Shown piece after piece: positions 2,753-24,477 of a DNA stretch of 64,000 bases. Source of the stretch: Hamiltosporidium tvaerminnensis FI-OER-3-3 (taxonomy: Eukaryota > Fungi > Microsporidia); NCBI GenBank assembly GCA_022605425.2, contig CM061256.1, positions 186,001 to 250,000 of the forward strand, given 5' to 3'. How positions within the stretch are numbered: the stretch's first letter is position 1; each line of letters opens with the position of its first letter. Below the pieces are notes generated by a model, which searched no databases, was not told the origin of the DNA, and saw nothing but the letters and a program-made list of their open reading frames with translations. Both the position numbers and the translations under genes were made by a program.

Positions 2753-2902
2753 AGGAGATGGCGCGAACGCCTTTCTCCCAACCAAAAAATAATGTAGTTG
2801 ACACGCCTTTCGGATATCACAACGTTTTAAGGGACTCTAAAGTGCATTGAGTAGAATTTAAAACGTGGAAAAGGTTTTGTACCTTTTCACTACAAGGTAA
2901 GT
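2753..2902 (-). ncRNA. U1: U1 spliceosomal snRNA
   Basis: The minus strand begins ACUUACCU (5' splice-site recognition sequence) directly after CCCCC. Helix H UGUAGU/ACUACA closes a 4-way junction. SL-I AAAAGGU/ACCUUUU; SL-II CGUUUUAA/UUAAAACG with loop AAUGCAC (U1A-type AUUGCAC); SL-III with a GAAA tetraloop; Sm site AUUUUUUG; SL-IV GGAGA..GGCG-UUCG-CGCC..UCUCC. Confidence 0.92.
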
Positions 2903-3190
2903 GGGGGTGAAAGATTAAGAAAATATTTAAAGGAAATATTGGGGAGTGAAAAATTAAAGGAAATATTCGTAGAAAATATCTAAGCGAATATTGGGAGTAA
3001 ATCTTTGAAGAAAAATTAAAGAAAATTATTTAAAGAAAATTATTTAAAGGAATATTTAAAGGAAATATTGGGAGTGAAAGATTAAAAGAAAAATTAAAGA
3101 AAATATTTAAAGAAAATTATTTAAAGGAATATTTAAAAGAATATTGGGAGTAAATCTTTGAAGAAAAATTAAAGAAAATATTTAAAGAAA
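2903..3190 (-). repeat. Degenerate repeats upstream of U1 carrying multiple CCC promoter-like motifs
   Basis: The plus strand repeats ATATTGGG(G)AGT(G/A)AA and AAAGAAAATTATTTAAAGG several times, giving ACTCCCAATAT on the U1 strand. Confidence 0.6.
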
Positions 3191-3214
3191 CAGGTAAAGA
3201 ATTTTATTTAATAA

Positions 3215-3372
3215 AATTCTGGGTTAAAATAATTTTAACATTTTTATATGTTTTCTTCTACTTCTTTAACCACTTTTGTCTCTTCTTCCAAATCCGACTC
3301 TTTATTTATGTTATTGGTCGGTTCCTCTAAAGTGGTTCCTCCTTGTGAAATAAAGGGTGCTTTATTTTTCGG
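3215..3372 (-). mobile_element. 3'-terminal fragment of R4/Dong-type LINE
   Basis: Matches the 3' end of the elements at 18245 and 47241 (TTCTGGGTTAAAAT...TATATGTTTTCTTCTAC...TCTTCCAAATCCGACTC). Confidence 0.85.
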
Positions 3373-3725
3373 TTTACTTAATAAATAAAATATTCTTAAT
3401 AAATAAAATATTTTTATCAAAGAATATTAAAATCAGAAATAAACAATAAAAATAATTCAGTTGTAATTAAAAGTATTAAATAAAACTAAAATAAAAATTT
3501 ATTACCAAATAAATAAAAATTTAAACTTTAAAAAGTACGAACTAGAAATTTATTTAATAAAATTAGAAAAAGTATTAAACATACAAACTACTGGAATATA
3601 CACTTCTAAAATACTAAAACACCAAAGTACTAGAATACTAAAATACTAAATACTAAAGTAGTAAAACACAAAACACAAAAACACTAAACCAAAGTACTAA
3701 ACTTACTTTATATTTATTGATATAT

Positions 3726-3917
3726 CTATTCATTTTTACTTTCATCTTCTTCAAAAACAGATATAAAATTACAAATGTCTGGTAATGGTAATTCACTAAT
3801 AGTTGGTTTCTTAATAGGTTTTAAACCAGAATATTTTTGTCCTAAATTATCTAAGGAAATAGAAATATCTTTATTACTTAAATTATCTTCTTCTTCTTTT
3901 AAATGATTATAAGACAT
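3726..3917 (-). CDS. Hypothetical small protein (63 aa)
   Basis: ATG-initiated ORF with a CCC motif just upstream (AATCACCCTTTATATG) and AATAAA just after the stop. No recognisable domain. Confidence 0.55.
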   Translation of the reverse strand: MSYNHLKEEEDNLSNKDISISLDNLGQKYSGLKPIKKPTISELPLPDICNFISVFEEDESKNE

Positions 3918-4770
3918 ATAAAGGGTGATTTTGATAATAGGTATTAGTTAAAGGGGTGTAAAATATAATGAAATATTTAAAGGGTAATAAGACATATAAA
4001 GGGTGATTTTGATAATAGGTATTAGTTAAAGGGGTGTAAAATATAATGAAATATTTAAAGGGTAATAAGACATATAAAGGGTGATTTTGATAATAGGTAT
4101 TAGTTAAAGGGGTGTAAAATATAATGAAATATTTAAAGGGTAATAAGACATATAAAGGGTGATTTTGATAATAGGTATTAGTTAAAGGGGTGTAAAATAT
4201 AATGAAATATTTAAAGGGTAATAAGACATATAAAGGGTGATTTTGATAAGTAGTAATAGGTTAAAGGGGTGTAAAATATAATGAAATATTTAAAGGGTAA
4301 TAAGACATATAAAGGGTGATTTTGATAAGTAGTAATAGGTTAAAGGGGTGTAGAATATAATGAAATATTTAAAGGGTAATAAGACATATAAAGGGTGATT
4401 TTGATAATAGGTATTAGTTAAAGGGGTGTAGAATATAATGAAATATTTAAAGGGTAATAAGACATATAAAGGGTGATTTTGATAATAGGTATTAGTTAAA
4501 GGGGTGTAAAATATAAAGAAATATTTAAAGGGTAATAAGACATATAAAGGGTGATTTTGATAATAGGTATTAGTTAAAGGGGTGTAGAATATAATGAAAT
4601 ATTTAAAGGGTAATAAGACATATAAAGGGTGATTTTGATAATAGGTATTAGTTAAAGGGGTGTAAAATATAAAGAAATATTTAAAGGGTAATAAGACATA
4701 TAAAGGGTGATTTTGATAATAGGTATTAGTTAAAGGGGTGTAGAATATAATGAAATATTTAAAGGGTAAT
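3909..4770. repeat. 78-bp tandem repeat x11 containing the CCC motif and first codons of the 63-aa gene
   Basis: AAGACAT (minus-strand ATGTCTT) recurs with its ATG at 3917, 3995, 4073, 4151, 4229, 4308, 4387, 4465, 4543, 4621 and 4699. Two units are 79 bp. Confidence 0.95.
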
Positions 4771-4947
4771 AAATTAAAGGAATTTAAATTTTATTTTACT
4801 ATAACTATTAAAAAATTTAGAGGGCTTTTAAAATATAAAAGAGATTTAAATATATCTTTAAAAACAAATTTAAATTATTAAATAGAATAAGATTTAACTA
4901 GAACTAAGAACAATTAGTATAATTATATCTCTACCGATCAAATTCAA

Positions 4948-4964
4948 GCCTCCATAGCGCAGTA

Positions 4965-4995
<31 letters not shown>

Positions 4996-5021
4996 CGTTG
5001 GTTCGAATCCGACTGGAGGCG
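4948..5021 (+). tRNA. tRNA-Asn (GTT)
   Basis: Acceptor stem GCCTCCA/TGGAGGC, anticodon loop CTGTTAA, T-arm GGTTCGAATCC, and a Pol III terminator TTTTT at 5026-5030. Confidence 0.97.
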
Positions 5022-6177
5022 ATTCTTTTTACAACTTTAATTAAATTATGATTCTTTATAATGAAGTATGATTCTTTAATAATTTGTATATTTTAAATTA
5101 CTCTTATACATAAAAATTATCTTTTACATATAAAATTATTCTTTACTTTTAAAACCTAGTATATTTTAATTTCTAACTACTCTTATGATTTAAAAGTTGA
5201 ATATATGTTTAACTTACATTTATATTCTAAGATAACTAAATTTATAACAATGATATTTAAAAATAAGTGTTAGATTATTTTAAAATGTAATTCTTTAACA
5301 TTCAAGAAATATATTTTACTAAGATAAATCTTAATTTATTTATTTTATTTTTATATATTTTATATGTATAATCTTTAAATTAGTAATAATATACAACTTT
5401 TTACAAAATTGAATTGTATCATATCTATATTAATACGATAATTAATTTGATATTATGAAGACATTAAAAAAAATTGGTTTCTTTCTTTAAACTTAAATAA
5501 AAAAAACCTGTATTTTTTTCGAAGGTTTATAACTTATAACTATAAATGTAAAATATTTAAAAGTGAATCATGTTTCTTTTATTTTTAATGTTTTTCATTC
5601 TATTGAATTTATGTCTCTTTTAGGATTAACATTTATGTCCGTTCATTTACACATTAAAGTTAATGAATTTTAACATGTGTTCGTTTAAACGTTATTTATA
5701 TTTTACTATTCGATGTATTGAATATACCATTTTTTAAAATTTGTTATATCTTATAAATTCATTGAAGTCTTTTTTTAGCTCTCATATGACTTCTACTATG
5801 ACATTATTATTCACTCTTCAATCAACATAAAAAACTTGAAAATGATTTTTAAGTTTTCAAAACAGAATACATGACTCTATTCACAATAGAAATATCCATT
5901 ACATGTCTTAACATTTGAAGAAAAATCCTCAAATGAGATATTATAGATTTATTTAAAATTGATTTCAATATATAAATATTATACTGTTTTTTATTTATTT
6001 TTAAAAATTCGAAGCGAGTCCTGTGAAATAATAATTCTTAGTATTACTAAGTGGTTATGTACTTAATAAAATATCCTTAATATCTTAAATAGTTTTCCAT
6101 TAATTTATTTCTGATTCTATACTTTACTATTTATTACCACCTACTCTTACTTACAGATCTCATTCTCTAATATCTTT

Positions 6178-6874
6178 AATGGAGAGAGTATATTGATTTA
6201 AAAAACTTTCTGCTTGGCAATGAGTGTGTGAAACTGGTGTGAGGTCATTGTTTGAATTTTTGGTGGGAATAAAACCACACTACATCTTTGGTTGTTCCAT
6301 GGGAGATGTCATGAATAGGAAAGGTCTAAGAAATGGAGAAACTTTTTCTAAAAATTTATTTGTAGTTTTTTATGTAAACAATTGCAGACCACATCTAAAT
6401 CCGTAGGTAATTGCTCTATAAAAGCATGGAAACCTAGCCTTGCTCACTCGGGCTAGAAGACTTAGCACCCGGGAAATATAAAAATAAAAACCATTTAAAG
6501 CCAGGAATGCTAAGTAGCAGGTTATACCTGTTGGTGTGACATTGCACTGTCTAGGTGGACCCATGTAGTCTCTGAAATATATCTTAGCAAGAAGTTTATT
6601 GGGTTCAGAAAGTGTAGAGTAAGTGAGAATGCTGCATAGTCTCAGGGGAGCCTAGGGGGGGGCTTTGGCCTTCGATCATACTCCATGCAACGAACATTAA
6701 CGAACTCCGGGCAACTGCCTCGCCTATTAATTAGGTTCTACACACCTGGTAGATGAAAGGCTTTGGGACGTAGGTATCGCAGGGGTTACCGATGGAGTGT
6801 TGGGGTATCAGTTATTTATGTTAAACCTAGAACTGCGGTAATGTCATGAAAACAAATATAACACTTGCCACTAT
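6178..6874 (+). mobile_element. Unclassified ~700-bp dispersed repeat, copy A
   Basis: Colinear high similarity to 45098-45806 and to the reverse complement of 31175-31888 and 60588-61287. No conserved ORF. Confidence 0.85.
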
Positions 6875-7139
6875 TGTAAAAAAATAGTATATTTTTAAAT
6901 ATATTTCTTCTAAATAAATACATATAAGTCGTTTCCTATCCTTTTCATTGTTTGATTTCTTATTTCTATACTTTGTTAAATTGATCTATCTTATATCTTT
7001 TTGAATATCTTATTTCCTTCTTAGATATTTAAAGGATATCTTTGTTAAATATTATTTTCATTTATTACAAGGGTTTAAATAAAGGATATTTAATTAGTTA
7101 AATTTAATTTAAATAACTAAGGTAAATTTAAAATATATT

Positions 7140-8064
7140 CTTTTGGATAACACCCATTAATACATAATAAATATGTTCTTTTGTTTAACACCCCCTTTAA
7201 ACACAATATATATATATTCTCTTGTATAAAATCCCTTTAAACACAATATATATGTTCTTTTGTTTAACACCCCCTTTAAACACAATATATATGTTCTTTT
7301 GTTTAACACCCCCTTAATACATTAAAAACATATCACTTGTATAAAACCCCTTTAAACACAATATATATGTTCTTTTGTTTAACACCCCCTTTATACATTA
7401 AAAACATATCAGTTGTATAAAACCCCTTTAATACATATATCATACTTATACTTTAAAACCCTTTTATAATAACAAAACATTTATTAATCTTTAACCCCTA
7501 ATCCCTAATAGTAAACTTACTATACTCTAATACCCTTTATAATGCTACTATACACTAACACCCTTTATATTACTACCCTATATAGTTTAACACCCTTTAT
7601 ACGATACTTCAGACTCTATATACCATAACACCCCTTATAATCATCTATACTTTTACTAACACCCTCTAACCCTACTATAACCATACCCTTTACACAACTA
7701 CTACTATACACTAACACCCTTATAACAACTACCCCTCCACCATACCCTTTACATTACTACCACCATACACATACCCCTTATAATACTACCACTCCACCAT
7801 ACCCTTTATACTACCTATATAACTACTACCAATATAACTAACACCCTTATAACTACTACTATACTCTAACACCCTTATAACTACTACCCCTCCACCATAC
7901 CCTTTATAATACCAATATAACTAACACCCTCTAACCCTACTATAACCATACCCTTTACACCACTACTACTATACTCTAACACCCTTATAACTACCACTAT
8001 AACCATACCCTTTACACCACTACTACTATACTCCAACACCCTTATAATACTACCACCCTACCCT
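7140..8064. repeat. C-rich (AACACCC/ATACCC core) degenerate minisatellites downstream of the Myb gene
   Basis: Repeated TAACACCCCCTTTAAACACAATATATATG and ACTACTATACTCTAACACCCTTATA units. Confidence 0.85.
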
Positions 8065-10098
8065 TTATATCCCATACCTCCGTCTTAAAGAACTATTATA
8101 ATGATTCTTTATAGAATTATCAGTTCTTCCAGGCAATTTCTTAGATATTTCACTCCATCTATTACCAATCTTCTTATGATAATGCATAATAACCTCTTCT
8201 TCTTGTAAACTAAAAGGTCCTTTCTTAATATCAGGATTTAAATGATTATGCCATCTTTCTCTACACTGCTTACCTACCCTTGTCTTCATCATTTTAGCTA
8301 TAAAAGACCAATTCTTAGGTTTGTATTTTTTTATAAGTAAAAGTAATTTGTTATCTTCTTCTTCTGACCAAGGACCCTTGGTTATTATTGGTAGTATGTC
8401 ACTCTCTGAACATAAAGGGGTGTCTACACTTGTACAAGACTTAGTATCTTCTAATACAGAGATTGTATTTGATATGTTACTGTTATTTGATATTTTACTG
8501 TTACTTGGCTCATAACACCTGTCCATATACATACTACCTCTTCTTATATAGTTAACACCCCTCTTATCTTCTACTCCTACCCAACTACTTCTTCTACCGT
8601 TATATGACTGTTGGTTACCAGTAGAGATAAAGGGGTGTTGAGTATTAGCATAAGTATCCTTATAAGTATCGTTATTATTAACACCCTGTTGTTTACTAGT
8701 ACTGTTACTAAAGGGGTGTTGAGTATTAGCATAAGTATCCTTATAGGTATCGTTATTATTAACACCCTGTTGTTTACTAGTACTGTTACTAAAGGGGTGT
8801 TGAGTATTAGCATAAGTATCCTTATAGGTATCGTTATTATTAACACCCTGTTGTTTACTAGTACTGTTACTAAAGGGGTGTTGAGTATCAATACAACCAT
8901 CCTTATAACTAACTCCCTCTAAATTATACTCCTTATCCTTATAACCATCAGACAATCCATCCTTATCACTATCCTTATATCCCTTATAATCGCTATCCTT
9001 AACACCCTTATATCCCTTATCTTTATTATTAATACCCCCTTTCATATCAATATCCCACTTATCACTCTTAGAATAAAACATTTTATCTTCCCATTCACTT
9101 TTACTTAAATAAGATATACTCTTATCACTAACACCCTTATAATCCTTATAATTATTTATACTATAATTAACACTACCACTTCTCTGTCTATTAACACCCC
9201 TATAGTTACAGTAGTTAGTCATTCTATAACCAACACCCTGTTGATTACTAGTAGAGTTGTTAAAGGGATGTTGTTTATCATTACTATTATTAACACCCTG
9301 TTGTTTATCAGTAGTATTACTAACACCCCTATAATTACTATCCATATTACTAACACCCCTATATTTACTATCAATATTACTAACACCCCTATAATTACTA
9401 TCCATGTCACTAACACCCTCTAATCCACTACCTCTCTTACTAACACCCCTATAATCATACTCCATATTACTAACACCCTCTAATCCACTACCTCTCTTAC
9501 TAACACCCCTATAATCATACTCCATGTCACTAACACCCCTATACCCTTCACTACCCTTTATTCCCCTATAACCCTCTACTCTTCCATAACCCCTTATCTC
9601 AGTCACTGATTTACTTCTCTTTTCCTTAAAAGACCCACTTAAAGTTACCAGTATTTTAGCTATAGACTTCTCAAAACTAGTTAAATGTTCATAATATTTA
9701 GTATTATAACACCCATTCTTATTATCAGTAAATACAGTCTTAGATAAATAAAGAGAAGGATTTTCTGAATCTCTGATAGAATCTCTCATAAGATTTCTAG
9801 GTATTTGTTTAGTGTTATCCTTGAATGATTCTTTATCATCTTTACTATCTCTAATACTATAACTATCTTTACTACTATTACTACTATTACAATCTTTACT
9901 ACTATTACTATCTCTAATACTATTACCATCTTTACTACCATTACCATCTTTACTACTATTACCATCTTTACTACCATTACTACTATTACTACTCTCCATA
10001 CTCTCACATACTTCCTCTACACACACCTCCTTACTCAACCCTACACTCATACTCTTACCTTCTCTCTCTTCTTCTACTTGCATTTCTCTTTTATGCAT
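8065..10098 (-). CDS. R2R3 Myb-domain transcription factor with repeat-expanded N-terminal region
   Basis: C-terminal KGPWSEEED...KNWSFIAK..RVGKQCRERWHNHLNPDIKKGPFS.EEE...IGNRWSEISKKLPGRTDNSIKNHYNS. CCC motif upstream (TTTAACCCATTTAAAAATG). Confidence 0.95.
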   Translation of the reverse strand: MHKREMQVEEEREGKSMSVGLSKEVCVEEVCESMESSNSSNGSKDGNSSKDGNGSKDGNSIRDSNSSKDCNSSNSSKDSYSIRDSKDDKESFKDNTKQIPRNLMRDSIRDSENPSLYLSKTVFTDNKNGCYNTKYYEHLTSFEKSIAKILVTLSGSFKEKRSKSVTEIRGYGRVEGYRGIKGSEGYRGVSDMEYDYRGVSKRGSGLEGVSNMEYDYRGVSKRGSGLEGVSDMDSNYRGVSNIDSKYRGVSNMDSNYRGVSNTTDKQQGVNNSNDKQHPFNNSTSNQQGVGYRMTNYCNYRGVNRQRSGSVNYSINNYKDYKGVSDKSISYLSKSEWEDKMFYSKSDKWDIDMKGGINNKDKGYKGVKDSDYKGYKDSDKDGLSDGYKDKEYNLEGVSYKDGCIDTQHPFSNSTSKQQGVNNNDTYKDTYANTQHPFSNSTSKQQGVNNNDTYKDTYANTQHPFSNSTSKQQGVNNNDTYKDTYANTQHPFISTGNQQSYNGRRSSWVGVEDKRGVNYIRRGSMYMDRCYEPSNSKISNNSNISNTISVLEDTKSCTSVDTPLCSESDILPIITKGPWSEEEDNKLLLLIKKYKPKNWSFIAKMMKTRVGKQCRERWHNHLNPDIKKGPFSLQEEEVIMHYHKKIGNRWSEISKKLPGRTDNSIKNHYNSSLRRRYGI

Positions 10099-10339
10099 TT
10101 TTAAATGGGTTAAACTTTTTATTTGTATCTTATTTATGCTAATTTAACAAATAAGGAAATTAAAAAAGTGTAGAAAGTATTTTGCATAAATAATTGTTGT
10201 TTATGCGTTTTAAGATAAATTAAATAATTTAAAAAAATAAATTAAAATAAGTTTTTGTATTTTTATATTTTCTTTAGTATATCTCTATGTATTCTCTTAG
10301 TATAGTGTTAGTATTTCTCTATGTAATTATTTATTTATT

Positions 10340-10945
10340 ATATAGTATTATCTTAGTATTTATTCTTTGTATTATCTTAGTATTTATTCTTTGTATTATC
10401 TTAGTATTTATTCTTAGTAATTATCTTGTTATTTATTCTTAGTAATTATCTTAGTATTTATTCTTAGTATTATCTTAGTATTTATTCTTAGTATTTATTC
10501 TTAGTATTTATTCTTAGTATTTATTCTTAGTATTATCTTAGTATTTATTCTTTGTATTATCTTAGTATTTATTCTTAGTATTATCTTAGTAATTATCTTA
10601 GTATTTATTCTTAGTATTTATTCTTAGTAATTATCTTAGTATTTATTCTTAGTATTATCTTAGTATTTATTCTTAGTAATTATCTTGTTATTTATTCTTA
10701 GTAATTATCTTAGTATTTATTCTTAGTATTATCTTAGTATTTATTCTTAGTATTTATTCTTAGTATTATCTTAGTATTTATTCTTAGTATTTATTCTTAG
10801 TATTTATTCTTAGTATTATCTTAGTATTTATTCTTTGTATTATCTTAGTATTTATTCTTAGTATTATCTTAGTAATTATCTTAGTATTTATTCTTAGTAT
10901 TTATTCTTAGTAATTATCTTAGTATTTATTCTTAGTATTATCTAA
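10340..10945. repeat. Compound 11/13-bp satellite (TATTTATTCTTAG / TATTATCTTAG / TAATTATCTTAG)
   Basis: Dozens of alternating units upstream of the Myb gene. Confidence 0.95.
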
Positions 10946-11984
10946 CTCTCTTCTTTCTATTATCTTACTCTCCTCTTACTACCAACTAACAGTAACAACA
11001 ACCGTAACAACTACCAACTACCAGTAACAGTATATGACTCATACGTTTTTATTTATAAATTTACATTCAAAGTAATTTTAATAATTAATTTTAATAAATA
11101 AGAATTACGTAATAATAAGTAATAAGGTAGATATATATTACTAAGATTTATCTAATTAAATACTCGTATACTATCTAATACTCATCTACCTACCTATTTA
11201 CCTACCTACTTATATTACTATAGATTTATTTCTTATAATTTACCTTTTTATCTTGGAAAAAGAAAAAGTAAATTAAAGAAGAAAAAAAATAATTCATAAA
11301 TCTAATAATAACATATAGAATAATACTACTAGTGTTTTAATTCATAAAATCTAATAATACTAGATATTTAATGATCTAATAACATATAGAATAACAATAA
11401 AATAATACTAATATTGTAATTCATAAAATCTAATAATAATAGATATTTAATAATATAATAACATATAGAATATCAATAAAATAATACTAATATTGTAATT
11501 CATAAGATTCTAATAATTTTAATTTATTTGTAGAATTCTAGTGTAAGTAATATAAATAATTAATATGAAAAATGAATTATATGAGTAATATGATATTGTA
11601 ATATCTACTTATATAAATGTCTAAATTATTTAGATTATTTATTATTTAGTTTATTTATTATTAAGATCATTTGGTTTATTTAGTTCTCATCTTGTCTACT
11701 TATATAAATATTTAAATCTTTAAATCTTATATCAATAGATTATTTAGATTATTTAATTGTTAGTTCTTATCTTGTCTACTTATATAAATATTTAAATATT
11801 TAAATTTTTAAATCTTATATTTTTTTTGTTTATGCTGATTGCTATATCATTGTATATTAAATATATCTTAAAATGCATAAAAGAATTAATAATATAATAA
11901 AAAAAATATTGAGGTTAAAATATAAAGAGTATAAAGAGTATATAAAGTATTATATTATATTTAAACAAAGTGTTAAGGTATTTA

Positions 11985-12195
11985 GATTATATAGAATATA
12001 TAAAATATAAAGATTATAAAGAGTATATAGAATATATAGAATATATAGAATATATAGAATATATAGATTATATAGATTATATAGAGTATGAAGAATATAT
12101 AGAATGTATAGATTATATAGATTATATAGATTATATAGAATTAAAGAATATATAGAATATATAGAATATATAGATTATATAGAGTATAAAGAGTA
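11985..12195. repeat. 9-bp tandem repeat (TATATAGAA/T)
   Basis: Directly visible. It generates the spurious YIE/YID ORF 11970-12155. Confidence 0.9.
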
Positions 12196-13684
12196 TTGTA
12201 AGACTTATAACTATTATATCCAAATATCCTCTTATCTCATATTTTTAAAAAATCTATTTATTTATTTTTTAATATAAAAAAATATATTATTTTTTTCTTA
12301 ATTATGACTTTTTTTTGATTTTGTTACAAATTAGATAAATTAATTTATTTTTTTTTTATTTCCTTAAAATTTATATTGAATTTTTTAATTTCCTTAAAAT
12401 TTATATTGAATTTTTTTTTTTTAAAAAAATATTTCTTTTAAATATACTATATATGGAAATATTTTTGAAAGAAATTTTTAAAAAATCAAAATATTTTTTT
12501 TTGTGATTTTTTAAGGAAATATTTTTTAGAGATATTTTTTAGGTGATTTTTTAAGGAAATATTTTTTAAAGATATTTAAGGTGATTTTTGAGGATATGTT
12601 TAAGATGATATTTTTAGAGATATTTAAGGTGATTTTTTTAGTGATGAGGTTTTAAAAAATAAAATCAGAATTGATTTGAGAATTTTGAACTTAAAAAAAT
12701 GATAAAAATATTATTTTTTATGATTTTTTCAAATCAAAAATTAAGGAATTCAATAAAAAATAATAATATCAAATAAAAAAAAATAAAGTAAAAATGAAAA
12801 TTAAGAAAATCAAATAAAAAAAAATAAAGGAAAAATTAAAAAAAATAAAGTAAAAATGAAAAATAAGAAAATCAAATAAAAAAAAAATAAAGTAAAAATG
12901 AAAATTAAGAAAATCAAATAAAAAAAAAATAAAAAAAAAATAAAGTAAAAAATAAGGAATTAAAATATGGAAAAGATATTTTGATTAAAAACAGTAAAGA
13001 ATAAAAATATAAAGAAAAATGAAATGTAAAATGAAAGAGTAAGGAAAATATATTTTGATTTAAAAAGTAAAGAATAAAAAAATGAAGAAATATGAGAAAA
13101 TAGTGAATTAGATAACAGAATTATAATGAAAATTAAAAATAAATATTTATTAAATATTATCTACTTTGTATTATATTAACTTACTATTAATTATTTTATA
13201 ATTATATATAAAGACTACTATTCTATATTTAAAGAAAACTTTGGTTTCTCATAATATTTCATTTGTAAAATTGTTCTTAATTATAATGTTTAATGATACA
13301 TAATCTCTTTATTGTTATGTGAATTTGTACTAATCTACTTAATGTTGAGTATCTGTTCTTATTATTTTCATTGGTATTTATTTTTAAATCAGTATGAATT
13401 ATCAAATAAACAATAATATTTGTTTTCTTATTATGAACTAGTTGTATTTTATTTTATATTCAAAGATTTCTAAGATGAACTTTACTCTATTTAGTTTGTA
13501 TGCTATTTCAGTAATGGAATACAAAAATACTTTTTTTGTGCATATGATACATCTTATTATACAGCAATAAGGGATTCTTATTCAATTTAATTCTTAAAAT
13601 GTTAGATGAAACTTGTAAATTTTAACTTAGAAGTAGATAAAAGATGGCTTATTATAATGTATATACTTGATTAGTATTAGCATG

Positions 13685-14370
13685 ATGGAGAGTGAATAAT
13701 TACATAAAAAACTATCTGCTCAGCAATGATTAATGGAAATTAGATGAAAACTATTGTTTATATTCTTAGATGTTGTATGGGAAGTCGTATACATGAAGAA
13801 AAGGTTTAAAAACATGATATTTTTTTCGACAAATCTTATTTGTAGTTTTTTATGTAACTAGAATGGAAACATGACAATGTATGTAGGTAATTGCTCTAGA
13901 AAAGCTTGGAAGCCTAAGCCTTTCTAACTTGGGGTAGAAGATTTATCGCTTGCAAGATATGAAAAACATATACTTTTGAAGCCAAAAAAAGCCAATTATT
14001 AGGATATACGTGTTGGTATAGCATTGCATTTTCTAGCTGAAGCTTATGTAGGTCGCCAAAATATATTTTAGACAGAAATGTTTTGTATGCTGAAAGAGTA
14101 GAGTAAGTTAAAATGCTGTTTAGTCTTGGGAAGCCACAGATGAGCTTTAACCTACGATCACAAACCATGCAACGAACATTAACGAACACTTGGCAATTTC
14201 CTCTCCAATTAATTGAGTTCCACACACCTTTTAGATGTAAGCCTTTGAGATATAAACATCGTAAGAAATACGGATGAAGTGTTAAAAAATAATTATTTAT
14301 GTTAAACCTAGAACAGCGTTAATGCCATGAAAACAAATATAAAATCCTTCTGTTATAAAAAGATGTGATA
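13685..14370 (+). mobile_element. Unclassified ~700-bp dispersed repeat, copy B (diverged)
   Basis: Shares blocks TTTGTAGTTTTTTATGTAAC, GTAGGTAATTGC, CCATGCAACGAACATTAACGAAC and ATTTATGTTAAACCTAGAAC with the other copies. Confidence 0.8.
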
Positions 14371-14789
14371 TATACGTCTCAAATATTTTAAAATACCCTT
14401 TTTTTTATTTCCCTTTCTCTGTTTATATATTAAATACTATGCTCATAATATATACTTATAAGTTTCATCACTTAATTAAAAGTAAAAACTAAATTCAAAA
14501 TATCTTATAATCTCATTATATGTCTACATATTCTTTCAAATCTTCTTTTCTAATACTTTATAGTTCTTATAATCTATCACTCTTAATAATATTCGTCTGT
14601 TCAATAAATATTTAATAAGGGTTCTATTTACTTAATTTTAAACTTTATAACCATTAAATATCATTATAAGTATATTTAATAAGACTATTACAATAATATG
14701 TATCACTATAGTATTATAAGTATATTACTATATAGTACATATTACTTTAATATCTTATAATTACCAACACATATACTTCTAGTATTCTA

Positions 14790-15300
14790 CTTCCTTATAC
14801 TTACTTACAAATATACCTCTTATAACTAACACCCTTATAATTACCTCCATATCCCATATATTTAACACTCTTTATTATACTTCTAATATTCTAACATCCT
14901 TATAATTACCACCATATCCCATATATTTAACACTCTTATACTTACAAATATACCTCTTATAACTAATACCCTTATAATTACCTCCATACCCCATATATTT
15001 AACACCCTTTATTATACTTACAAATATACCTCTTATAACTAATACCCTTATAATTACCTCCATATCCCATATATTTAACACTCTTATACTTACAAATATA
15101 CCTCTTATAACTAACACCCTTATAATTACCTCCATATCCCATTAATTAACACCCTTTATTATACTTCTAATATTCTAACATCTTTATAACTACAAACACA
15201 TATACTTCTATCATTAACACCCTTATACCATCATAATATATACCTCTTGTAATTAACACCCTTTACCCAACATTCTTGTAATTAACACCCCCCCTTGTAC
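14790..15300. repeat. C-rich minisatellites (TAACACCCTT core) upstream of the TBC gene
   Basis: Repeated ATACTTACAAATATACCTCTTATAACTAA(C/T)ACCCTTATAATTACCTCCATATCCCATATATTTAACAC. Confidence 0.9.
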
Positions 15301-15365
15301 TGATTTCTTTCTTGAAACACCAAATATTAAAAAAAACAGTAAAAAAAACCAAAAAAACAAACAAA

Positions 15366-16583: not shown

Positions 16584-16864
16584 AGTATGGTAATATTAGT
16601 GTGTTAGTGTGTTAGTGTTAGATATATGTTAGATATTAGGGTTAGATATTAGTGCTATTAGATATTCTATTAGATATCATTATTAGATATTATTATTAGA
16701 TTTTGTAATAGTAGTATTATTAGTATTATGTTAGATATTAGTAATATGTATGTTATTATTGGTGTTATTAGTGTTAGATATTAAATATTAGATATTATTA
16801 GATTGTAGAGGATAATAAATAAAACATTAAAATAATAATTTTATTAGTATAATTATAAGTAATA

Positions 16865-17300
16865 ATAGGGTGTTAACAATAGTATAGATTATTATAAGGG
16901 TGTTAACAATAGTATAGATTATTATAAGGGTGTTAATTATGTATATAATACTATAAGGGTGTTAATTATGTATATAATACTATAAGGGTGTTAACAATAG
17001 TATAGATTATTATAAGGGTGTTAATTATGTATATAATACTAACACAGTGTTAATCATATATCTAATACTAACAGGGTGTTAATCATATATCTAATACTAA
17101 CACGGTGTTAATCATATATATAACATAGTAACATATCCCACTATAATACTAACAATACTAAATATCCTTATAATACTAAAAATACTAACATATCCTACTA
17201 TAATACTAACATATTCTAACATATACCATACTATAATACCAATATACCATACTAACCCTATCCCATACTATACTACCAACATACCATACTAACATATCCC
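16865..17300. repeat. 29-bp AAGGGTGTTAA repeats switching to C-rich repeats
   Basis: TATAAGGGTGTTAA(C/T) units at 16865-17040, palindromic TAACAC-N-GTGTTA at 17040-17110, then ATACTAAC/ATACCA repeats. Confidence 0.85.
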
Positions 17301-17401
17301 ACATATACTAACACTACTATATCTCTTACATTGTATTATATCTTCTCTTACAGTTTCATATCACATCCTTTTAAACATCCACACAAAAAACAACATAAAA
17401 A

Positions 17402-18115
17402 ATGCATTCAAAAAACAAAATAGGAAAAATATTAAAATTATTCTTTACATTCCTACAGTCCTTATTATTTATAACAGGAATATCTATATCACTTATATTT
17501 ATAACCCTTTATATTAAAGAACATAGATTGTTAGAAATACCTTTTAAATTACTTATATATGTTATTGTTATAGGGGTGTTATTTATAAGTATATCAGTAA
17601 CAGGAATAATAATATCAACAGCTAGTAGTAGTAGTAGGAGGAGGAGGGGGGAAGTTAGGGGTGAGGGTAATAGTAATAAAGATAATAGTATAGATAATAG
17701 TAATAAAGATACTAAGGATAAAGACACTAAGGATAAAAATATAAATACCACACACAACACACATGTTCTTAATACCCTTTATGTTATATTGTCTTTAACA
17801 CTACTAAACATATTACTAATAAACATAATAAAACATAACAAATCTATAAGTAAAATAAGAGGGTATGCAAGTGGTAGGTGGAATAGGTTAAGTGAGAGAC
17901 AAAAGGTTTTTATACAGAATAGGTTAGAGTGTTGTGGTTATAGTAATAGTAGTGATAGGGTTGGTGGTAAAGGGTGTGTTAGTAGTGTAGGGTGTGGTGA
18001 TAGGTTTGTTAAGATTGGAGAGAGTGTTAAGCTTGCTGTACAGAGAATATGGGTTAGTGTGTTCTTTATAGTGTCAATGAGTTTAGCCATACTAGCAATA
18101 CTAAAGATGAAGTAG
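17402..18115 (+). CDS. Tetraspanin-like membrane protein
   Basis: Four hydrophobic segments and IQNRLECCG...C...GC in the large loop between TM3 and TM4. Confidence 0.85.
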   Translation: MHSKNKIGKILKLFFTFLQSLLFITGISISLIFITLYIKEHRLLEIPFKLLIYVIVIGVLFISISVTGIIISTASSSSRRRRGEVRGEGNSNKDNSIDNSNKDTKDKDTKDKNINTTHNTHVLNTLYVILSLTLLNILLINIIKHNKSISKIRGYASGRWNRLSERQKVFIQNRLECCGYSNSSDRVGGKGCVSSVGCGDRFVKIGESVKLAVQRIWVSVFFIVSMSLAILAILKMK

Positions 18116-18244
18116 TAGAAGTGATATAGGGATAGTGTTAGGTATTATATTAGGGTTAGGGTTAGATGGTTTGATTGTTTAGATAAATATGGTTAGGGGT
18201 AGTATTGTTTATATAAATAGGGTTAATATTCTTTATATTATTTA

Positions 18245-21200
18245 ATAAAATTCTGGGTTAAAATATTTTTATGATTTTATATGTTTTCTTCTACCACTTG
18301 AACCACTGCTGTCTATTCTTCCAACTCCAACTCTTCATTTGATTTAGTTGTTGGTTCTTTTGCTGTGGTTATGCAATCCTAAATAAGGGGTAAAATATTT
18401 TCTGTATTTTCCGTTTTAACACCATCTTCCTCTCTCTTCTCTTCTTTTAAAGGGGGTGTTGGTTCCTCATGCATCTCTGCTCTCATAATAACACCCATTG
18501 ACCCTCTCTCTGCACTCTCTTCGGCATTTAGTCCTGACTCAAGTCCTCTTCGTCGATCAAAGGAAATTGTTTCGACTGTCTTCTTAAGTACTAAGGACTG
18601 AATGTATGCCTCTACATTCAGGAATATTTCTAGTCTTTTAATATGAGATTTATGGTATTTTGTCACAATACCGTCCCAGGTCATCACATAAGGGATTATC
18701 TCAACACTACACTTATAAATAAGGCCCAACTCATTGGCTAGCAGGTCATACTTCCTAAGTTTTTCAGTTTCAACTATTTGAAGTGAATCTTGGGAAGTGA
18801 TTCCTACTTCAATGAGTGTTATCTTATTCTTCTTCTTATCCAAAATAAATATGTCCGGTCTGTTATTCCGAATTTTAACATCAGTTTTAATTCAGGTGTC
18901 CACTCTTATCTCTGCATACTCATTATCAAGAATTTCTTGAACTGAGTGGCTCCTTATTCGTTTTGAGGACTTAAACTTATATCTATTTAAGAGAAGTAGG
19001 TGTAGGCATTTAACCACTTCATTATGCCGTCTGGTATAGTCATGGCCTAGCATTTTTTCACATATAGTTGCTAAATGATCTACAGTCTTACCAGACTTCC
19101 CGCAATGTTGACACACACCATCTGCTCCCCAGAATACATTTCTATCCTGGATATAGCAGAACACAGCTTCATTTCGTGGCCTAATATTTCCTCTCTTTAA
19201 CCATCTTGAAGAGTCACTAACACTCACAAGCTCATTTTTTCTTGCATTATATAACTTTGAATGAAGTTTTCGTTTTTCTATTTCGTTATATAGTTTTGCA
19301 AGTTGAGTTTCTTCTAAACTTTTCTTAGTGACTTCTTCTACTAACCTGTACTTTACTTTTAAGAAGCCTTTTATTAGTGCAAGATGGGTTTTATTATTAT
19401 TCTCCACCTTGAAGATTGTTGCTCATCTAGTGTATATTTCTTTACTTTTTTCCAGACAATCCAAGAGTTGCAGAAGCATATGTTCGCTTCGCAACTCAAC
19501 ACTATGTAGGCCTCTTCCAAGTTCTGTTCTAGGAAGGTATAGACGCTCTTTACATCCTGGGCGGAGATGTATTTTATTCTTCACCAACACCGCACGCACT
19601 GCATCATCTAGCTTAGAGAAGTCAGCCGGTTCAAGTCGAAGTACTCCTATGTGATAGTTGATTGACGATATCGCATGTTGATTGATTGCAGAAAATAAAT
19701 TTTTTGCATTTAATCTAGTGTGACAAAGTCTTTCAACTCTTGATATAGGTTTACTTTGTACTTCTTCAAATGAGCTACGTGTTGGAATTCCTCTGCTATC
19801 TTCTATTATTCCTAAATATTTGTAAACACTAACACCTTCTAGAAGAGTAGCAGTATCTTCACAACACGTATCATTTGTGGCTGACTTCTCTTTGTTAATC
19901 TCTAACCCAATCACCTCTAAAAATTCCTTTTCCTCGCCTGTCATAGCACTCAATGTCGAACTGTCTTTAGCAAGGAGCTTTTAGATCCTTAATAAAAAAG
20001 AGATGATTAGTAGAATGGGATTCTGCATCTGTTTGTACTGTCACTTTTGTGTATTTTTCATTAAGCTTTCGGCTCAATGGGTCTATACACAACGCAAACA
20101 AGAATATTGACAAATTATCTCCCTACAGAATCCCTCTCTTAATCTTCTGCGTATGATTTTTTTTGGTTCTACTCATATATCAATTTTTCATTTTGATATA
20201 ATTACCTTATAAATTTCAGGATCCAATCAGGTAAATTAAAGTTATCAATGCATTGAGTTAAATAAGCATGATCTATTAAATCATAAGCTTTTTTAACATC
20301 AATCCATGTTACCTTAAGATTATTTCCATACTCTTTATTTAAGGCAATATTCAGTAGAGCCTGCTCTTTCGCTCCCTGCACACCTCTTACCGCCCCTAAT
20401 TGGTTCTCTGCAAGATACCCTCGCCTTTCCACTTCAATTTGAACAACTTTCGTTACGCACTTTGTCGTTAACTTATAGAGGTTTGACATACAAGTGATTG
20501 GCCTGTAGTCAGAGCCTCTTCGTGGAATTCCTTTCGGTATCAAATACGTAAGCCCGCAGTAAAATCAATCAGCTTGAGGTGTTCCTTCTAAACATATAAC
20601 TTTCACAATATCATAAAGATATTTGTGAAGAGTTGTAAGTTTCTTAATGAAAAAATTGTAAATATCATCAATTCCAGCAGCGATCCAATTGAGAAGCCAA
20701 TTAATGATATTTACAAGTTCATCAAGTGAAGGAAACGTGGTCGAATGATTATCTGATGCAAATGGAATCAAATAATCATCATACGTGAAAGTGTCATCAT
20801 TTTTGTTCCACATTGTAGATCAAAAACTTACAATTTCATCACGATTAACCACATGCTCGGACTCCACACGCTCAGATAACCCACGATAAAATCGTTTTTG
20901 AAAAAACTCAAACATACGATTCTCTTTTCGGAATTGCTTCCTACTTTCATGCATCGTAATTTTTTTCTCGTACACATTAAAACCTCATTCTTCTTAACTA
21001 AAGCCTCAGAAAGATCAGTTACGCTGCTCAAGTTTAAATTAAACTCTCGCATGATTTTCTTAAGGCTCTTCGTTTCCGAAGTGGAGAGCTTTTCCTGCTT
21101 ACGAGCCTTCTCGAGAAGATCTTTGAAAAGTACTAACTTAGAAATTTTACTTTCTATGTTTTCCTTCCAAGCGGATCTAGGCTTCTCCTTACGTGTTTCC

Positions 21201-21900
21201 TCGTCATATCCTTTCTGGGCCGCCTGGATAATTCTAGCTGCATCACTAACATTCTTAGGCACATGAGATTCAGCATATTTACCAGTGATTTGATTTATGA
21301 GTTCCAAAACTTTACTTTCAACCAATTCACTTGGAAGTTTTCTAGTTCGGACCACTACATTCTCGATTTCCTTCTCAGAGAGTTCCTTGATTTTACACAA
21401 GAACTTTTCTCTTAGGTTCATATAGAGTGTAGTGTCAGTTAAGGAACATGCATGGCTCGGCGAGACAAGTGGCGAATTTACGTCGCTCTCCATTCTCTTC
21501 CTGCCTTATTTCCCTTTCTGCCTCATTATGTGTTAATTTTTTTACCACATCGATATTAAAAGTTCGACCAAATTTCCCATTATAGTACCTAAGAATTGCA
21601 AACCAGCCATTTCTAGGCATTCTCTCAAACCTTTTTTGCACTGCTGACATAGTAGATATAGGCCATTCCTGCTCTATGGCTGTGACAGAGTCAAGTATTG
21701 AATGCAATACCATTAGTCAATTTCCTTCTGGAATGGCAGGTGCATTGAGGTTTTCATTGTGTTGGCTGGTTCACACGCAGAAGAATCGGGACCGGAAGAA
21801 TGAGGTGTGGAATCGAGCAGGTTGACTGGAGTAAATGAAACGTAGTGCTCGATGGGAAGTGGGTGTTATTACGGATGGTCGGTTGTGGTGGAAGTGTCTC
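18245..21900 (-). mobile_element. Near-full-length non-LTR retrotransposon, RLE type (R4/Dong-like), inactivated
   Basis: RT motifs YRPITC, WIDVKKAYD, GIL*GD, YKYLG; CCHC knuckle CQHC..DH...C; RRHN; PD...IEV...K restriction-like endonuclease. Broken by several stops and frameshifts, with the catalytic DD region altered (ATTAAGGAT). The 5' boundary is approximate. Confidence 0.92.
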
Positions 21901-22310
21901 GGATATAGTCACTACATCTCTATCACATGTTTTTGTCTCTTTTAAACTAATTTCCGAGTTGTTTACAACCTTTATTTCTTCATTTTTTATATTTTCGCTG
22001 TCAACTTTTTTTCTTCTACCCATTGTCTTATTATATAGATAAAAATAAAAGGTAATAAAATATAAAAATAAACCTACTTTAATCTTATCCCTTACTATCT
22101 CTTACTACCTCTTATACTTACTATCTCTTACTACAACTTATCCTTACTATCTCTTATTTCTACTAACTACTTACTATCTCTTACTACCTCTTATCCTTAC
22201 TACTTATTATCCCTGCTAACTACTAACCACTTCTACTACTTACTAACCCCCTCCTACCTACTACTACTTACTACTAACACCCTCTACTACCTACTAACAC
22301 CCCGCCCAAA

Positions 22311-23489
22311 CTACCCAACAATCTTTTTCTCTTTATATACTTTTACTTCTGTTGGTGGCATACCTTCTAACACTTTATATTCTTCTTTAATCTTTTCATC
22401 AATTTCTTGTATTTGTTTATTAAGTCTTAACATATTAGGTTCAATTTTTTTTTCAAATTCTTCTTTTTTTTTAAACAATTCTTCTATGCATCTATCTATA
22501 TCTTGATAATTCTTAGGAAGATTAACTTGTACTTGATTAAGCAATGATATAAGACTAATAGGCATAGTAAAAGTTTGATGAGAAATTGGTATTTTTTTTA
22601 CTGCTTCTATTATACTATTAAAATTATCAGAATCTAATTTATATTTCTCTTCTATTAAATTATTACGTTGTATTTCATATTCTTTAATACGTATTTTTAT
22701 ATGTTTTTTTGATTCTTCGATTTCTGTTTGTTTTTTTATTTCTTGTAAATGCTTTTCGTATATTTCTTGCTTTTTTCTTATTTCTTCGTTTTGTTCTTTT
22801 CTTTTTGACATTAAATCTTTTTTCTTTTTGTTAAGGTCTTCTATCTTGTTTTCATAGTCAATTATAGAATTTGATTTTGTTTTTCCTTGGGTTTTTAGTT
22901 TTTCAAGTTCGGTTTTTATGCTTAAAATTTGTTCTTTTTCTGTTTTTATTTGAGTTTGAATTTCGTTTAATTCTTTGTTAAGTTTTTCAAGTTTTTCTTC
23001 GTATTTGGATAATTCTTCTTCTTTGGTTTTTATTGTGCCGAAACTGCGTTTTTTACGGGATATTTCTGAGAGTTGGCTGGCTATCATTTTTTCTTCTTGT
23101 GCTGTCACTTTCTTCTTAAGAAGGTGAGATTTTAAATCACTTTCTTGTTTCTCGAGCTGTGAGAAATTGTCGATGTGCAGTTTCTTCTTTTCTGAATGCA
23201 TCTCGTTTTTTAAGGAAGTGTAGGTAGGAAGAATTTCTTGCTTTTTTGATATTAAAGTGTTACGAATACTTAATGTTGCCTTATGGTCAGTTTCTAGTTG
23301 GTCTTTCTTCTGATATAACTGTGTACGAGGTGAATTCTCACGTTGAAGTGCTATTTCTGTAGATACTTTGCTTTCATAGTCTTTTACTGTTTCAACTATG
23401 CTGTTTATTTCACTGTTTATGCGTGAAATAGCGTCGAGATGTTCTTTTATGCCAGGGACACGTCTTCGTTGTTGTGTATTTTCAGTCAT
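22311..23489 (-). CDS. Coiled-coil protein, Bfr1 / proton-pump-interactor-like
   Basis: Long heptad coiled coil. The segments 'EEKMIASQLSEISRKKRSF' and 'FTMPISLISLLNQVQVNLP...DIDRCIEEL..KK' resemble my recollection of fungal Bfr1 motifs. CCC motif upstream. Confidence 0.65.
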   Translation of the reverse strand: MTENTQQRRRVPGIKEHLDAISRINSEINSIVETVKDYESKVSTEIALQRENSPRTQLYQKKDQLETDHKATLSIRNTLISKKQEILPTYTSLKNEMHSEKKKLHIDNFSQLEKQESDLKSHLLKKKVTAQEEKMIASQLSEISRKKRSFGTIKTKEEELSKYEEKLEKLNKELNEIQTQIKTEKEQILSIKTELEKLKTQGKTKSNSIIDYENKIEDLNKKKKDLMSKRKEQNEEIRKKQEIYEKHLQEIKKQTEIEESKKHIKIRIKEYEIQRNNLIEEKYKLDSDNFNSIIEAVKKIPISHQTFTMPISLISLLNQVQVNLPKNYQDIDRCIEELFKKKEEFEKKIEPNMLRLNKQIQEIDEKIKEEYKVLEGMPPTEVKVYKEKKIVG

Positions 23490-23589
23490 AAAAATGGAGG
23501 GTCGTAAAAAATAATATTTACATAAATTTTTAAAGGAGAAAAAAATGGGTCTTTTAATTTAAATGGAAGGTCTCAATTAAGAAAATAAT

Positions 23590-24110
23590 ATGAAAAAGGA
23601 GAATATAATAATTAAAAGAGAAAGGAAATAGAAGGGTAAAGTAATCGTTATTTAATAAGTAAAATGAGAATGTAATATAAGAATGATAATTAAATAAATA
23701 GAATGGAAGGGTAAAGTAATCGTTATATAATAAGTAAAAGGAGAATATAATAATTAAAAGAGAATGGGAGGAAGGGTAAAGTAATCGTTATATAATAAGT
23801 AAAAGGAGAATATAATAATTAAAAGAGAAAGGGAAGAAGGGTAATGTGGATGGAATATAAAAGAAAAAGGAGAATGTAATAATTGAAAGAGAAAGGAAAT
23901 GCAAGGGTAATATAATAAGTAAAAGGAGAATATAATATAAGAATGATAATTAAATAAATAGAATGGAAGGGTAATAAATAAGGAAAGGTGGGTAAGTATA
24001 ATAAGAAAAAGGAGAATGTAATAATATAAAGGAAAACAAGAATGAAGGGTAATATAAAAAGGAGAAGTAAAGGTAATATACTAGAAATATAAGTAAAAGG
24101 AGAATACAGT
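23590..24110. repeat. G-rich degenerate minisatellite upstream of the coiled-coil gene
   Basis: Repeated GAAGGGTAAAGTAATCGTTATATAATAAGTAAAAGGAGAATATAATAATT. Confidence 0.85.
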
Positions 24111-24477
24111 AGACTAATGTATATCTAAATAAAATATATTTTTAAGAAAAGGAAACACATGAATAACTTAATGGAATAAAAATATTTATATAAAATCAAA
24201 TACTAGTCTGTCTTTAATCAGGTATTTATTTATTTACTTAAGTTCTTTAAGTAAATAAAAATCCTTTTTAAAATACGAATTATTGACTATGGTTATATCA
24301 TATGAAAGCAGATTTATTGGTTTTTTTTGCTTGGCTTAGCCCTATCTTATTATGTCTTATCATATTAAACTCAAGTTTTTATGTTGTATGTGACGCTTAG
24401 TTACTTGTATGGTATTCGGTAATACTTTTTATTGAGTTACATCTAATTCTGTTTTTATTTAAAACTATTTTCAATCA

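Follow-up and report, generated by a model that had tools for sequence, protein, structure and literature searches.

In unicellular fungi the coding strand is biased towards C at the 5' ends of genes and towards G at their 3' ends (McLean & Tirosh 2011, PMC3315797). The bias reaches promoters, 3' untranslated regions (UTRs) and fourfold-degenerate sites, is present in many genes although not in all, and increases in genomes rich in AT; as its cause, the authors considered phase-specific transcription-coupled mutation or an avoidance of C linked to the CTP supply (PMC3315797). For microsporidia, a CCC-like core promoter motif has been described (Peyretaillade et al. 2009, PMC2803860). Here we report on a stretch of 64,000 nucleotides (hereafter the window) from Hamiltosporidium tvaerminnensis FI-OER-3-3, CM061256.1:186001-250000 of assembly GCA_022605425.2, in which tandem arrays flanking several genes are, in the sense of the gene, C-rich ahead of the start codon and G-rich past the stop codon. 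We conclude that this polarity is an extreme form of the known fungal gene-end base bias, which it extends to a microsporidian, and that the observation as a whole is a repeat-amplified variant of two known features and not a new telomere-like process, as had been proposed in an earlier reading of the letters alone (the sequence-only reading). H. tvaerminnensis is a microsporidian parasite of Daphnia. The window was placed via an annotated protein on a chromosome of 676,572 bp in total; it spans 186-250 kb of these 677 kb and the locus is thus chromosome-internal. In a protein search, the open reading frame (ORF) of the RabGAP-TBC gene (TBC; 423 codons) showed 100% identity to H. tvaerminnensis proteins and 97% identity to an H. 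magnivora protein. This search ruled out a Plasmodium-like genome, which the AT-richness, the Myb gene and the repeats might have suggested.

The explanation that we favour, with a probability of roughly 0.65, is that the gene-end bias together with the CCC box has been enlarged into minisatellites in the Hamiltosporidium lineage. Tandem Repeats Finder and a sliding-window scan recovered, strongly skewed, all the arrays that the sequence-only reading had named, with the unit lengths it had given (29/30, 33, 78 and 81 bp; Table 1), and the enrichment of the motif GGGTGTTA and its complement TAACACCC is real: 59 occurrences compared to 0.97 expected, a number reached in none of 100 shuffles. In 300-nt flanks the sense-strand GC skew lies between -0.69 and -0.86 upstream of the TBC, tetraspanin-like, coiled-coil and TAF5 genes, and between +0.78 and +0.88 downstream of TBC, the coiled-coil gene and TAF5. 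The tetraspanin-like gene has a downstream skew of only +0.33 because a retrotransposon is inserted ~120 nt past its stop codon. For the Myb gene the values are -0.29 upstream and +1.00 downstream; the weak upstream value belongs to the right-hand (i.e. 5') flank, which had already been exempted from the rule. The arrays at 7131-8067 are free of C in the Myb sense (G 111 / C 0 over the 300 nt that follow the stop codon), and the scan gave G 25 / C 288 for 7151-8150.

The orientation is therefore non-random and linked to genes, with an excess of G on their 3' sides, contrary to the outcomes (random orientation, or slippage of promoter CCC motifs without such an excess) that the sequence-only reading had named as refuting it. 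The form in which this was first put nevertheless needs revision. That C-rich arrays lie to the left and G-rich arrays to the right regardless of gene strand is uninformative, since the C-left/G-right arrangement is its own reverse complement and equals a coding strand that is C-rich 5' and G-rich 3' on either gene strand. The right-hand arrays are G-rich as described, but two of them (2903-3190 and 3898-4772) are the 5' flanks of the minus-strand U1 gene and of a minus-strand 63-codon ORF. Likewise, arrays do flank the genes, but of the 59 motif copies 17 belong to the coding sequence of Myb; there, AGGGGTGTTAGT encodes RGVS repeats in the same orientation as the array past the Myb stop codon; the Myb 81-bp array and one 30-bp array are coding, and hence the motif runs through Myb and is not found only around genes.

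To compare these flanks with those of other genes we used seven 20-kb regions from different H. tvaerminnensis chromosomes (143 kb in total), fetched via copies of the retrotransposon. The majority of the conserved genes there had ordinary flanks, among them those for mRNA capping enzyme, RNase P p30, ubiquitin-conjugating enzyme, the large subunit of ribonucleotide reductase, a CPSF_A-domain protein (PF03178), an eIF-5/eIF-2B-domain protein (PF01873) and glutathione peroxidase. Sec24 and RPS26, on two other chromosomes, share the polarity of the window: the 300 nt upstream of Sec24 have G 2 / C 70 and its downstream skew is +0.58, and RPS26, which was identified from exon 2 alone (L011:20070-20390), has a 65-bp C-rich array 115-345 nt upstream. 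The RPS26 gene itself (region L011, 20036-20393, plus strand) has a short intron right after the ATG and is for this reason missing from the called genes. In total, 8 of the 28 genes sampled are strongly polar, and it is in the same eight that both flanks are polar. When 150-nt flanks are pooled, the skew is -0.79 upstream and +0.82 downstream for these eight genes compared to -0.11 and 0.00 for the 20 others, and among the strongly skewed 150-nt flanks 16 are concordant and one is discordant with gene orientation (p = 0.0003). The polarity is genuine and gene-linked, but confined to a minority of the sampled genes; as a general rule it fails, being absent at four other ORFs of the window and at 16 of the 18 genes in the 143 kb elsewhere. 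That only part of the genes is affected is also a feature of the fungal gene-end skew (33% in C. albicans compared to 8/28 here).

The polarity continues into the coding sequences. By quarter of the coding sequence (CDS), the skew at third codon positions (which include sites that are not strictly fourfold-degenerate) is -0.36, -0.82, -0.62 and +0.54 for TBC, -0.31, -0.38, -0.14 and +0.83 for the coiled-coil gene, and -0.20, +0.59, +0.87 and +0.87 for Sec24. The gradient is also present in TAF5, as well as in the array-free RNase P p30 gene and the TBC gene of Gurleya vavrai. Being located at third positions, it is not explained by protein composition. With respect to codon usage, C-ending codons dominate the first three quarters of TBC (GC3 up to 0.55, with the skew at its lowest), and A/T- and G-ending codons the last one (GC3 0.13). 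The AT skew does not flip between gene ends; A exceeds T on the pooled G-strand of the arrays, and T exceeds A in the first 200 nt past stop codons, which gives a mixed picture for C-to-T deamination as the sole cause of the skew. The locus thus resembles the fungal skew in having a coding strand that is C-rich 5' and G-rich 3', in the extension into flanks and synonymous sites and in the unflipped AT skew. It differs from it in being microsporidian, in having tandem arrays with a shared core, in that the affected genes are clustered in an island, and in its extreme values, with 0-8 C or 1-6 G in flanks of 150-300 nt.

The arrays are related to each other. Whole-length alignments of the 30-bp units of the Myb CDS, TBC 3' and TAF5 3' arrays gave scores of 36-49, compared to 22-26 for the best of 100 shuffles, and the 72-bp unit upstream of TBC is made up of two subunits of the same 30-bp-family kind. 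The G runs have the common context (T/A)TAAAGGGTGTTA(A/G), and the 5' arrays match the 3' arrays only if inverted relative to their genes. Hence, many of the arrays have a common ancestry; they would represent one dispersed family with a unit of ~30 bp and the core TATAAAGGGTGTTAAT, whose reverse complement would be a CACCC-type CCC box. The suggestion that most arrays share a core was correct in that the arrays have a specific core that is longer than CCC, but among the 5' arrays the exact complement of the 8-mer is present only in that of TBC. The exact 8-mer is mostly a motif of 3' sides or of the coding-sense G-strand, and the other 5' arrays carry the variants CACCCTTT, ATATCCC and TTACCCTT. 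We also considered an inverted duplication per gene and rejected it, since the complementarity between the two arrays of one gene does not exceed that between arrays of different genes. A metagenome scan for three spaced copies of GGGTGTTA returned at least 120 unrelated tandem repeats (GC 0.33-0.69), with no homologue of the 30-bp unit among them (best score 36 of 120).

As to the CCC box, 62% of 29 genes have CCC in the last 40 nt ahead of the ATG and 13.8% have CAC(C)nTT there, compared to 9.7% and 0.8% of background windows, respectively. Single copies of AACACCCCTTT, CACCCCTTAAAT and ACACCTTTAAT precede the start codons of the PUF, Sec24 and capping-enzyme genes, respectively, CACCCCC immediately precedes the 5' end of the U1 gene, and a CACCCTTTAT box adjoins the ATG of the 63-codon ORF, with each 78-bp unit of the array in front of this ORF repeating a CCC-type box, the ATG and the first codons. 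Judged from sequence, the complement of the array core appears to be a CACCC-type version (CACCCTTTATA / TAACACCCTTATAA) of the microsporidian CCC promoter box, a CCC run in an A/T-rich context that in the 62% of genes is located from a few to ~35 nt before the ATG. The known motif is single-copy in very short spacers, whereas the arrays have 5-20 copies of it spread over 200-900 bp, and it is also found inverted past stop codons, such that the core sits in opposite orientations at the 5' and 3' gene ends.

A core of this kind might instead be a binding site, a reading that we find unlikely. It would then be a putative site for a Myb/Reb1/Rap1-like protein or for a C2H2 zinc finger reading CACCC (it presumably resembles the Rap1 ACACCC and KLF CACCC sites), with the 5' arrays acting as multiplied promoters and the 3' arrays as polar roadblocks or insulators that confine transcription in a genome prone to read-through. 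Consistent with this, the core TAAAGGGTGTTAAT is invariant in 10 of 10 units of the TAF5 3' array in two species when the units are anchored on another part, with a spacer that varies, the same core is present in arrays of differing unit length, and its complement forms the proximal promoter boxes of the array-free PUF, Sec24 and mRNA capping enzyme genes. However, the units of one array are recent copies, which makes core invariance weak evidence, most of the conserved genes sampled have no such arrays, and relatives manage without them. The transcriptional overrun and the transcription of both strands that are documented in microsporidia would be in keeping with such a role (PMC2803860). In a related form, the CACCC/GGGTGTTA core would be a cis-element and the inward-pointing arrays at both gene ends a polar insulator or a convergent-promoter cassette, which we likewise regard as doubtful. 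If this were the case there would be multiplied starts at the 5' end and a roadblock, a terminator or an antisense start at the 3' end, and local copying to neighbouring genes would account for the 22-kb island.

The 3' arrays begin at the stop codon or at most 12 nt past it. The poly(A) signal reported for H. tvaerminnensis is A[AT]TAAA (PMC10542269); it is first found at +129 to +580 in the array genes, just past the G-rich stretch, compared to +8 to +66 in the other genes, and in TAF5 the first canonical signals lie just past the end of the array. TBC, the tetraspanin-like gene and TAF5 have no ATG in the 329-668 nt ahead of them. Could the 3' arrays be inverted CCC-box promoter arrays that fire antisense into the gene, each polar gene being a convergent sense/antisense unit? 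If both arrays were co-transcribed, the RNA would form a hairpin whose ends are complementary. In favour of this reading, the 3' cores match working-type promoter boxes exactly as reverse complements (CACCCTTTATA before the ATG of the 63-codon ORF and ATATAAAGGGTG past the Myb and TAF5 stop codons), the two flanks are polar in the same genes, and antisense transcription has been reported in microsporidia (PMC2803860). Nevertheless, this is improbable, given that arrays of the same gene lack any particular mutual complementarity and that the Sec24 and RPS26 3' flanks are G-rich without the motif.

Somewhat less probable still is that the arrays that are G-rich and C-free downstream of genes, and on the antisense strand upstream of them, are R-loop-prone elements for pausing or termination, as has been proposed for mammalian G-skewed terminators. 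The RNA made by a polymerase that exits a polar gene on either side would be rich in G and free of C, and the arrays stop just short of the first canonical poly(A) signals. R-loops are usually nucleated by clustered G runs, however, and here the GGG runs are ~26-30 nt apart with G making up only ~25% of the array; moreover, most genes have no such arrays. Taken together, the functional readings (binding site, multiplied promoters, roadblocks, antisense promoters and R-loop terminators) have a low to modest probability.

According to the explanation that we prefer, i.e. bias and CCC box enlarged into minisatellites, the coding strand in a subset of genes would be C-rich and G-poor around the start, including the CCC box, and G-rich and C-poor around and past the stop. 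Tandem duplication would have enlarged these flanks, together with some low-complexity coding stretches, into minisatellites in the Hamiltosporidium lineage. An array located in a regime that depletes G (5') or C (3') would persist only in the matching orientation and become homogenised to that regime; arrays that sit in, and homogenise to, the local bias would end up in the C orientation 5' and the G orientation 3', i.e. TAACACCC...gene...GGGTGTTA. The 5' arrays would correspond to multiplied promoter/leader units, probably tolerated because a leader free of G cannot contain AUG, and the 3' arrays to expansions of the 3' UTR or the terminator zone, which would run from the stop codon to the first canonical poly(A) signal. 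The orientation would be filtered by a transcription-linked bias, for which both mutational and adaptive causes are considered in the literature.

Data from relatives bear on the age and turnover of the arrays. In H. magnivora the same arrays are present at the same positions (TBC, tetraspanin-like gene and TAF5), including the G-rich 3' flank of the tetraspanin-like gene, and the differences are mainly insertions or deletions of whole units, which points to slippage or unequal exchange between the sister species; within H. tvaerminnensis, one strain lacks one 27-amino-acid coding unit of Myb. Astathelohania contejeani and G. vavrai have neither arrays nor motif at these genes, although they keep the Myb-TBC-tetraspanin and TBC-coiled-coil synteny, respectively (the coiled-coil ortholog adjoining TBC in G. 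vavrai has 30% identity, E = 1e-39). Their proteins are shorter, with 239 compared to 677 amino acids here for Myb, 311 compared to 405 for TBC and 193 compared to 237 for tetraspanin, and the ~440 amino acids by which Myb exceeds its 239-residue A. contejeani ortholog are repeat-derived. Both relatives show a weak baseline bias, with ~150 nt before the ATG being C-rich and G-poor with CACC/ACCC words, and with a G-rich 3' end of TBC. The arrays are inherited, lineage-specific minisatellites. As in other minisatellite or variable-number tandem repeat families there are head-to-tail units of 26-81 bp, differences in whole-unit copy number between sister species and strains, and dispersed arrays, coding as well as non-coding, with differing units around a common G-rich core; unlike in these families, the arrays are oriented according to the polarity of the gene next to them and are concentrated at start and stop codons.

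Between A. contejeani and the window (8-18 kb) the gene order is kept, while both Myb and the tetraspanin gene have been flipped with respect to TBC; these rearrangements are single-gene inversions. Such inversions, the homologous arrays in inverted orientation on both sides of TBC and the general richness of the island in tandem repeats (28.6% of its length) might be taken to indicate that the brackets are arms of a foldback or inverted-repeat element, or that the skew switch marks a replication origin or recombination hotspot in each gene. This is very improbable, as the features that define foldback elements and per-gene origins are lacking. Homology between the arms is limited to the core or to one subunit, terminal duplications were not seen (no systematic search for target duplications was made), and the "loops" are syntenic housekeeping genes that are array-free in relatives. 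Sign changes of the skew are spaced 1.4-7 kb apart, each of them within a gene, a density that is far too high for origins and makes the origin per gene that had been listed as a candidate implausible; gradients at third codon positions are also present where there are no arrays. The reverse change is located in intergenic spacers, e.g. at ~17110.

The sequence-only reading had seen in the arrays the polarity of telomere-capped molecules and had suggested that an undescribed process, e.g. telomerase-like healing of breaks, seeds a telomere-like motif around genes. The TTAGGGTTAGGG on which it drew is present at 18150, as a single TTAGGG run of 2.5 copies in a G-rich 3' flank beside the retrotransposon end that is conserved in H. 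magnivora, and the G-rich strand does run 5' to 3' away from the gene on both sides. In this there is a likeness to telomeric and interstitial telomeric repeats, to the plant telo-box and to yeast Tbf1 sites. The telomere repeat of H. tvaerminnensis is, however, (TTAGGG)n (PMC10542269) and not GGGTGTTA, there are only 17 TTAGGG hexamers (10 + 7) in the 64 kb with no run longer than 2.5 copies, and units of 26-81 bp are unlike the product of a short telomerase template, of which no signature was seen. The arrays are internal to the chromosome and at orthologous syntenic sites in H. magnivora, some lie within the Myb coding sequence, and one 5' array repeats a promoter box and a start codon. Finally, the polarity is symmetric by construction and explained by the known gene-end bias (PMC3315797). 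We detect no link between the arrays and telomeres, and the telomere reading is strongly disfavoured, to the extent that we give it hardly any credence.

Several points weigh against an origin of the arrays in gene-end bias. Microsporidia are absent from the main text of the 2011 survey (PMC3315797), and the published fungal bias is a modest average while the Hamiltosporidium flanks are almost free of one base. The polar genes are clustered, 6 of 6 in the island (window 2-24 kb) compared to 3 of 22 elsewhere (p = 0.0002), where repeat- and transposon-rich regions are over-represented as the comparison loci were fetched via retrotransposon copies, and bias alone leaves this clustering unexplained. 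It also leaves unexplained the spread of one array family to distant loci, 42 kb apart, and the strict conservation of the core, of which 12-14 nt are kept while the rest of the unit varies, a pattern as compatible with a functional site as with homogenisation. The assignments of arrays to UTRs and promoters are putative. The one discordant flank belongs to a WW-domain gene (region L011, 17750-18862). In this gene the 5' flank and the first half of the CDS are G-rich in sense, and it has a coding 12/24/36-bp array.

Tandem arrays make up 28.6% of the 22-kb island, compared to 0.4% of the window between 24 and 57 kb and 0-1.3% in four of the comparison regions (L002-L005). Within the 5.3 kb that separate the divergent genes Myb and TBC, several further arrays without the GGGTGTTA core are located at 10262-12965, which suggests that the island is prone to tandem duplication in general. 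They have units of 74/283 bp, 79 bp and 9 bp x 24 as well as units that are T-rich and then A-rich, mostly with little GC skew (12501-12750 is G-rich).

Microsporidia with large genomes are used to ask how reduced genomes re-expand, and the locus points to a route besides transposons, i.e. tandem growth of the promoter box, the leader, the 3' UTR and low-complexity coding stretches (Myb and TBC). Flanks nearly free of G or C that differ in copy number between strains and species could serve as test cases for a mutational versus an adaptive bias, and the Iso-Seq data already published offer a way to see if transcripts start or end elsewhere where CCC boxes are multiplied. The arrays also break short-read assemblies, and gene predictors read through them, giving models of 786/842 amino acids for Myb, 637 for TAF5 and 500 for TBC; the older Myb models (786 and 842) read past the stop codon into the 3' arrays.

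Table 1. Genes, arrays and other features of the window (positions are those of the window; aa, amino acids; snRNA, small nuclear RNA)
Feature	Position	Strand	Remarks
PUF gene	1-1491	-	extends past the left window edge
U1 snRNA gene	2752-2904	-	Rfam RF00003, full-length match with E = 1e-13 and 57 bits (curated gathering score, 69.5, not reached)
Array, 77/38-bp units	2903-3190		G-rich on + strand (G 68 / C 12); U1 5' flank, hence C-rich in U1 sense
8-bp array	3606-3688		3' flank of small62; G > C in small62 sense
small62, 63-codon ORF	3726-3917	-	from the ORF list; candidate gene only, without annotation
Array, 78 bp x 11.2	3898-4772		units 97% identical; small62 5' flank; G 213 / C 14 at 3901-4850
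tRNA-Asn			recognised among the genes of the window
Arrays, 38/39-bp and 28/57-bp units	7131-8067		start at the Myb stop codon; 14 GGGTGTTA copies
Myb gene, 677 aa	8065-10098	-	N-terminal ~560 aa built from coding arrays (81-bp, 8628-8888; 30-bp, 9285-9543; 18/27/36-bp, 9838-9993; same motif, same orientation)
Array, 72 bp = two ~36-bp subunits	14790-15300		TBC 5' flank; nearly G-free; carries TAACACCCTTATAA
RabGAP-TBC gene, 405 aa	15366-16583	+	
TBC 3' flank	16590-17123		GT-rich 12/13-bp arrays 16590-16800, then 29/30-bp GGGTGTTA array 16867-17123
C-rich arrays, 21/27/37-bp units	17113-17301		5' flank of the tetraspanin-like gene
Tetraspanin-like membrane protein gene (TM237), 237 aa	17402-18115	+	syntenic tetraspanin in A. 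contejeani
G-rich 3' flank of the tetraspanin-like gene	18120-18230		includes TTAGGG x 2.5 at 18150-18164
Degenerate retrotransposon	~18235-22050	-	
26/53-bp array and two GGGTGTTA copies	22083-22310		begins at the coiled-coil stop codon; G-rich in coiled-coil sense
Conserved coiled-coil protein gene (CC392), 392 aa	22311-23489	-	
65/75-bp array	23590-24110		coiled-coil 5' flank; C-rich in coiled-coil sense
TAF5 5' flank	56951-57184		G-poor, no tandem array; GAGCCC right before the ATG
TAF5 (TFIID subunit 5) gene	57185-58930	+	CDS skew flips sign mid-gene
GGGTGTTA array, 30/33 bp x 8.4	58942-59198		starts 12 nt past the TAF5 stop codon
PWWP gene and 216-codon ORF			also recognised in the window

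The U1 snRNA gene, which is absent from the annotation, has the 5' end ACUUACCU, an Sm-like site and a terminal stem. For the exact protein of the 63-codon ORF there was no entry in the protein collection. Three paralogous ORFs of ~780-810 codons, at 27233-29659 (plus strand) and 49924-52278 (minus strand) in the window and at 6590-8908 (minus strand) in region L004, are 23-35% identical and represent a lineage-specific multi-copy family; none of them has polar flanks or a Pfam domain match.

The retrotransposon has an RVT_1 domain and is degenerate, split into at least eight ORF pieces. Fragments are present at 3201-3337, 24471-24633, 36987-37507 and 47245-47934 as well as in the regions L002-L005, and copies on several chromosomes are 86-91% identical; the protein search covered proteins of 0.55-1.75 times the query length, and its matches are fragment-sized gene models. 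The suggestion that it might be an element with a restriction-like endonuclease (R2-type) got no support from Pfam or PDB sequences. Its 3' end lies ~120-130 nt past the stop codons of both the tetraspanin-like gene and the RNase P p30 gene (L004), in convergent orientation.

A GC-rich dispersed repeat of ~720 bp is found at 6150-6900, 13822-14342, 31166-31887, 45099-45818 and 60575-61264, and also in the regions L002-L005, with 75-91% identity among the window copies and 67-91% when those of L002-L005 are included. The repeat showed no coding potential and belongs to no Rfam family; for the block at 6150-6900, considered as a structural RNA, Rfam gave a chance-level snoRNA match only. In region L002 two copies of this repeat are located back to back, inverted, beside a retrotransposon end.

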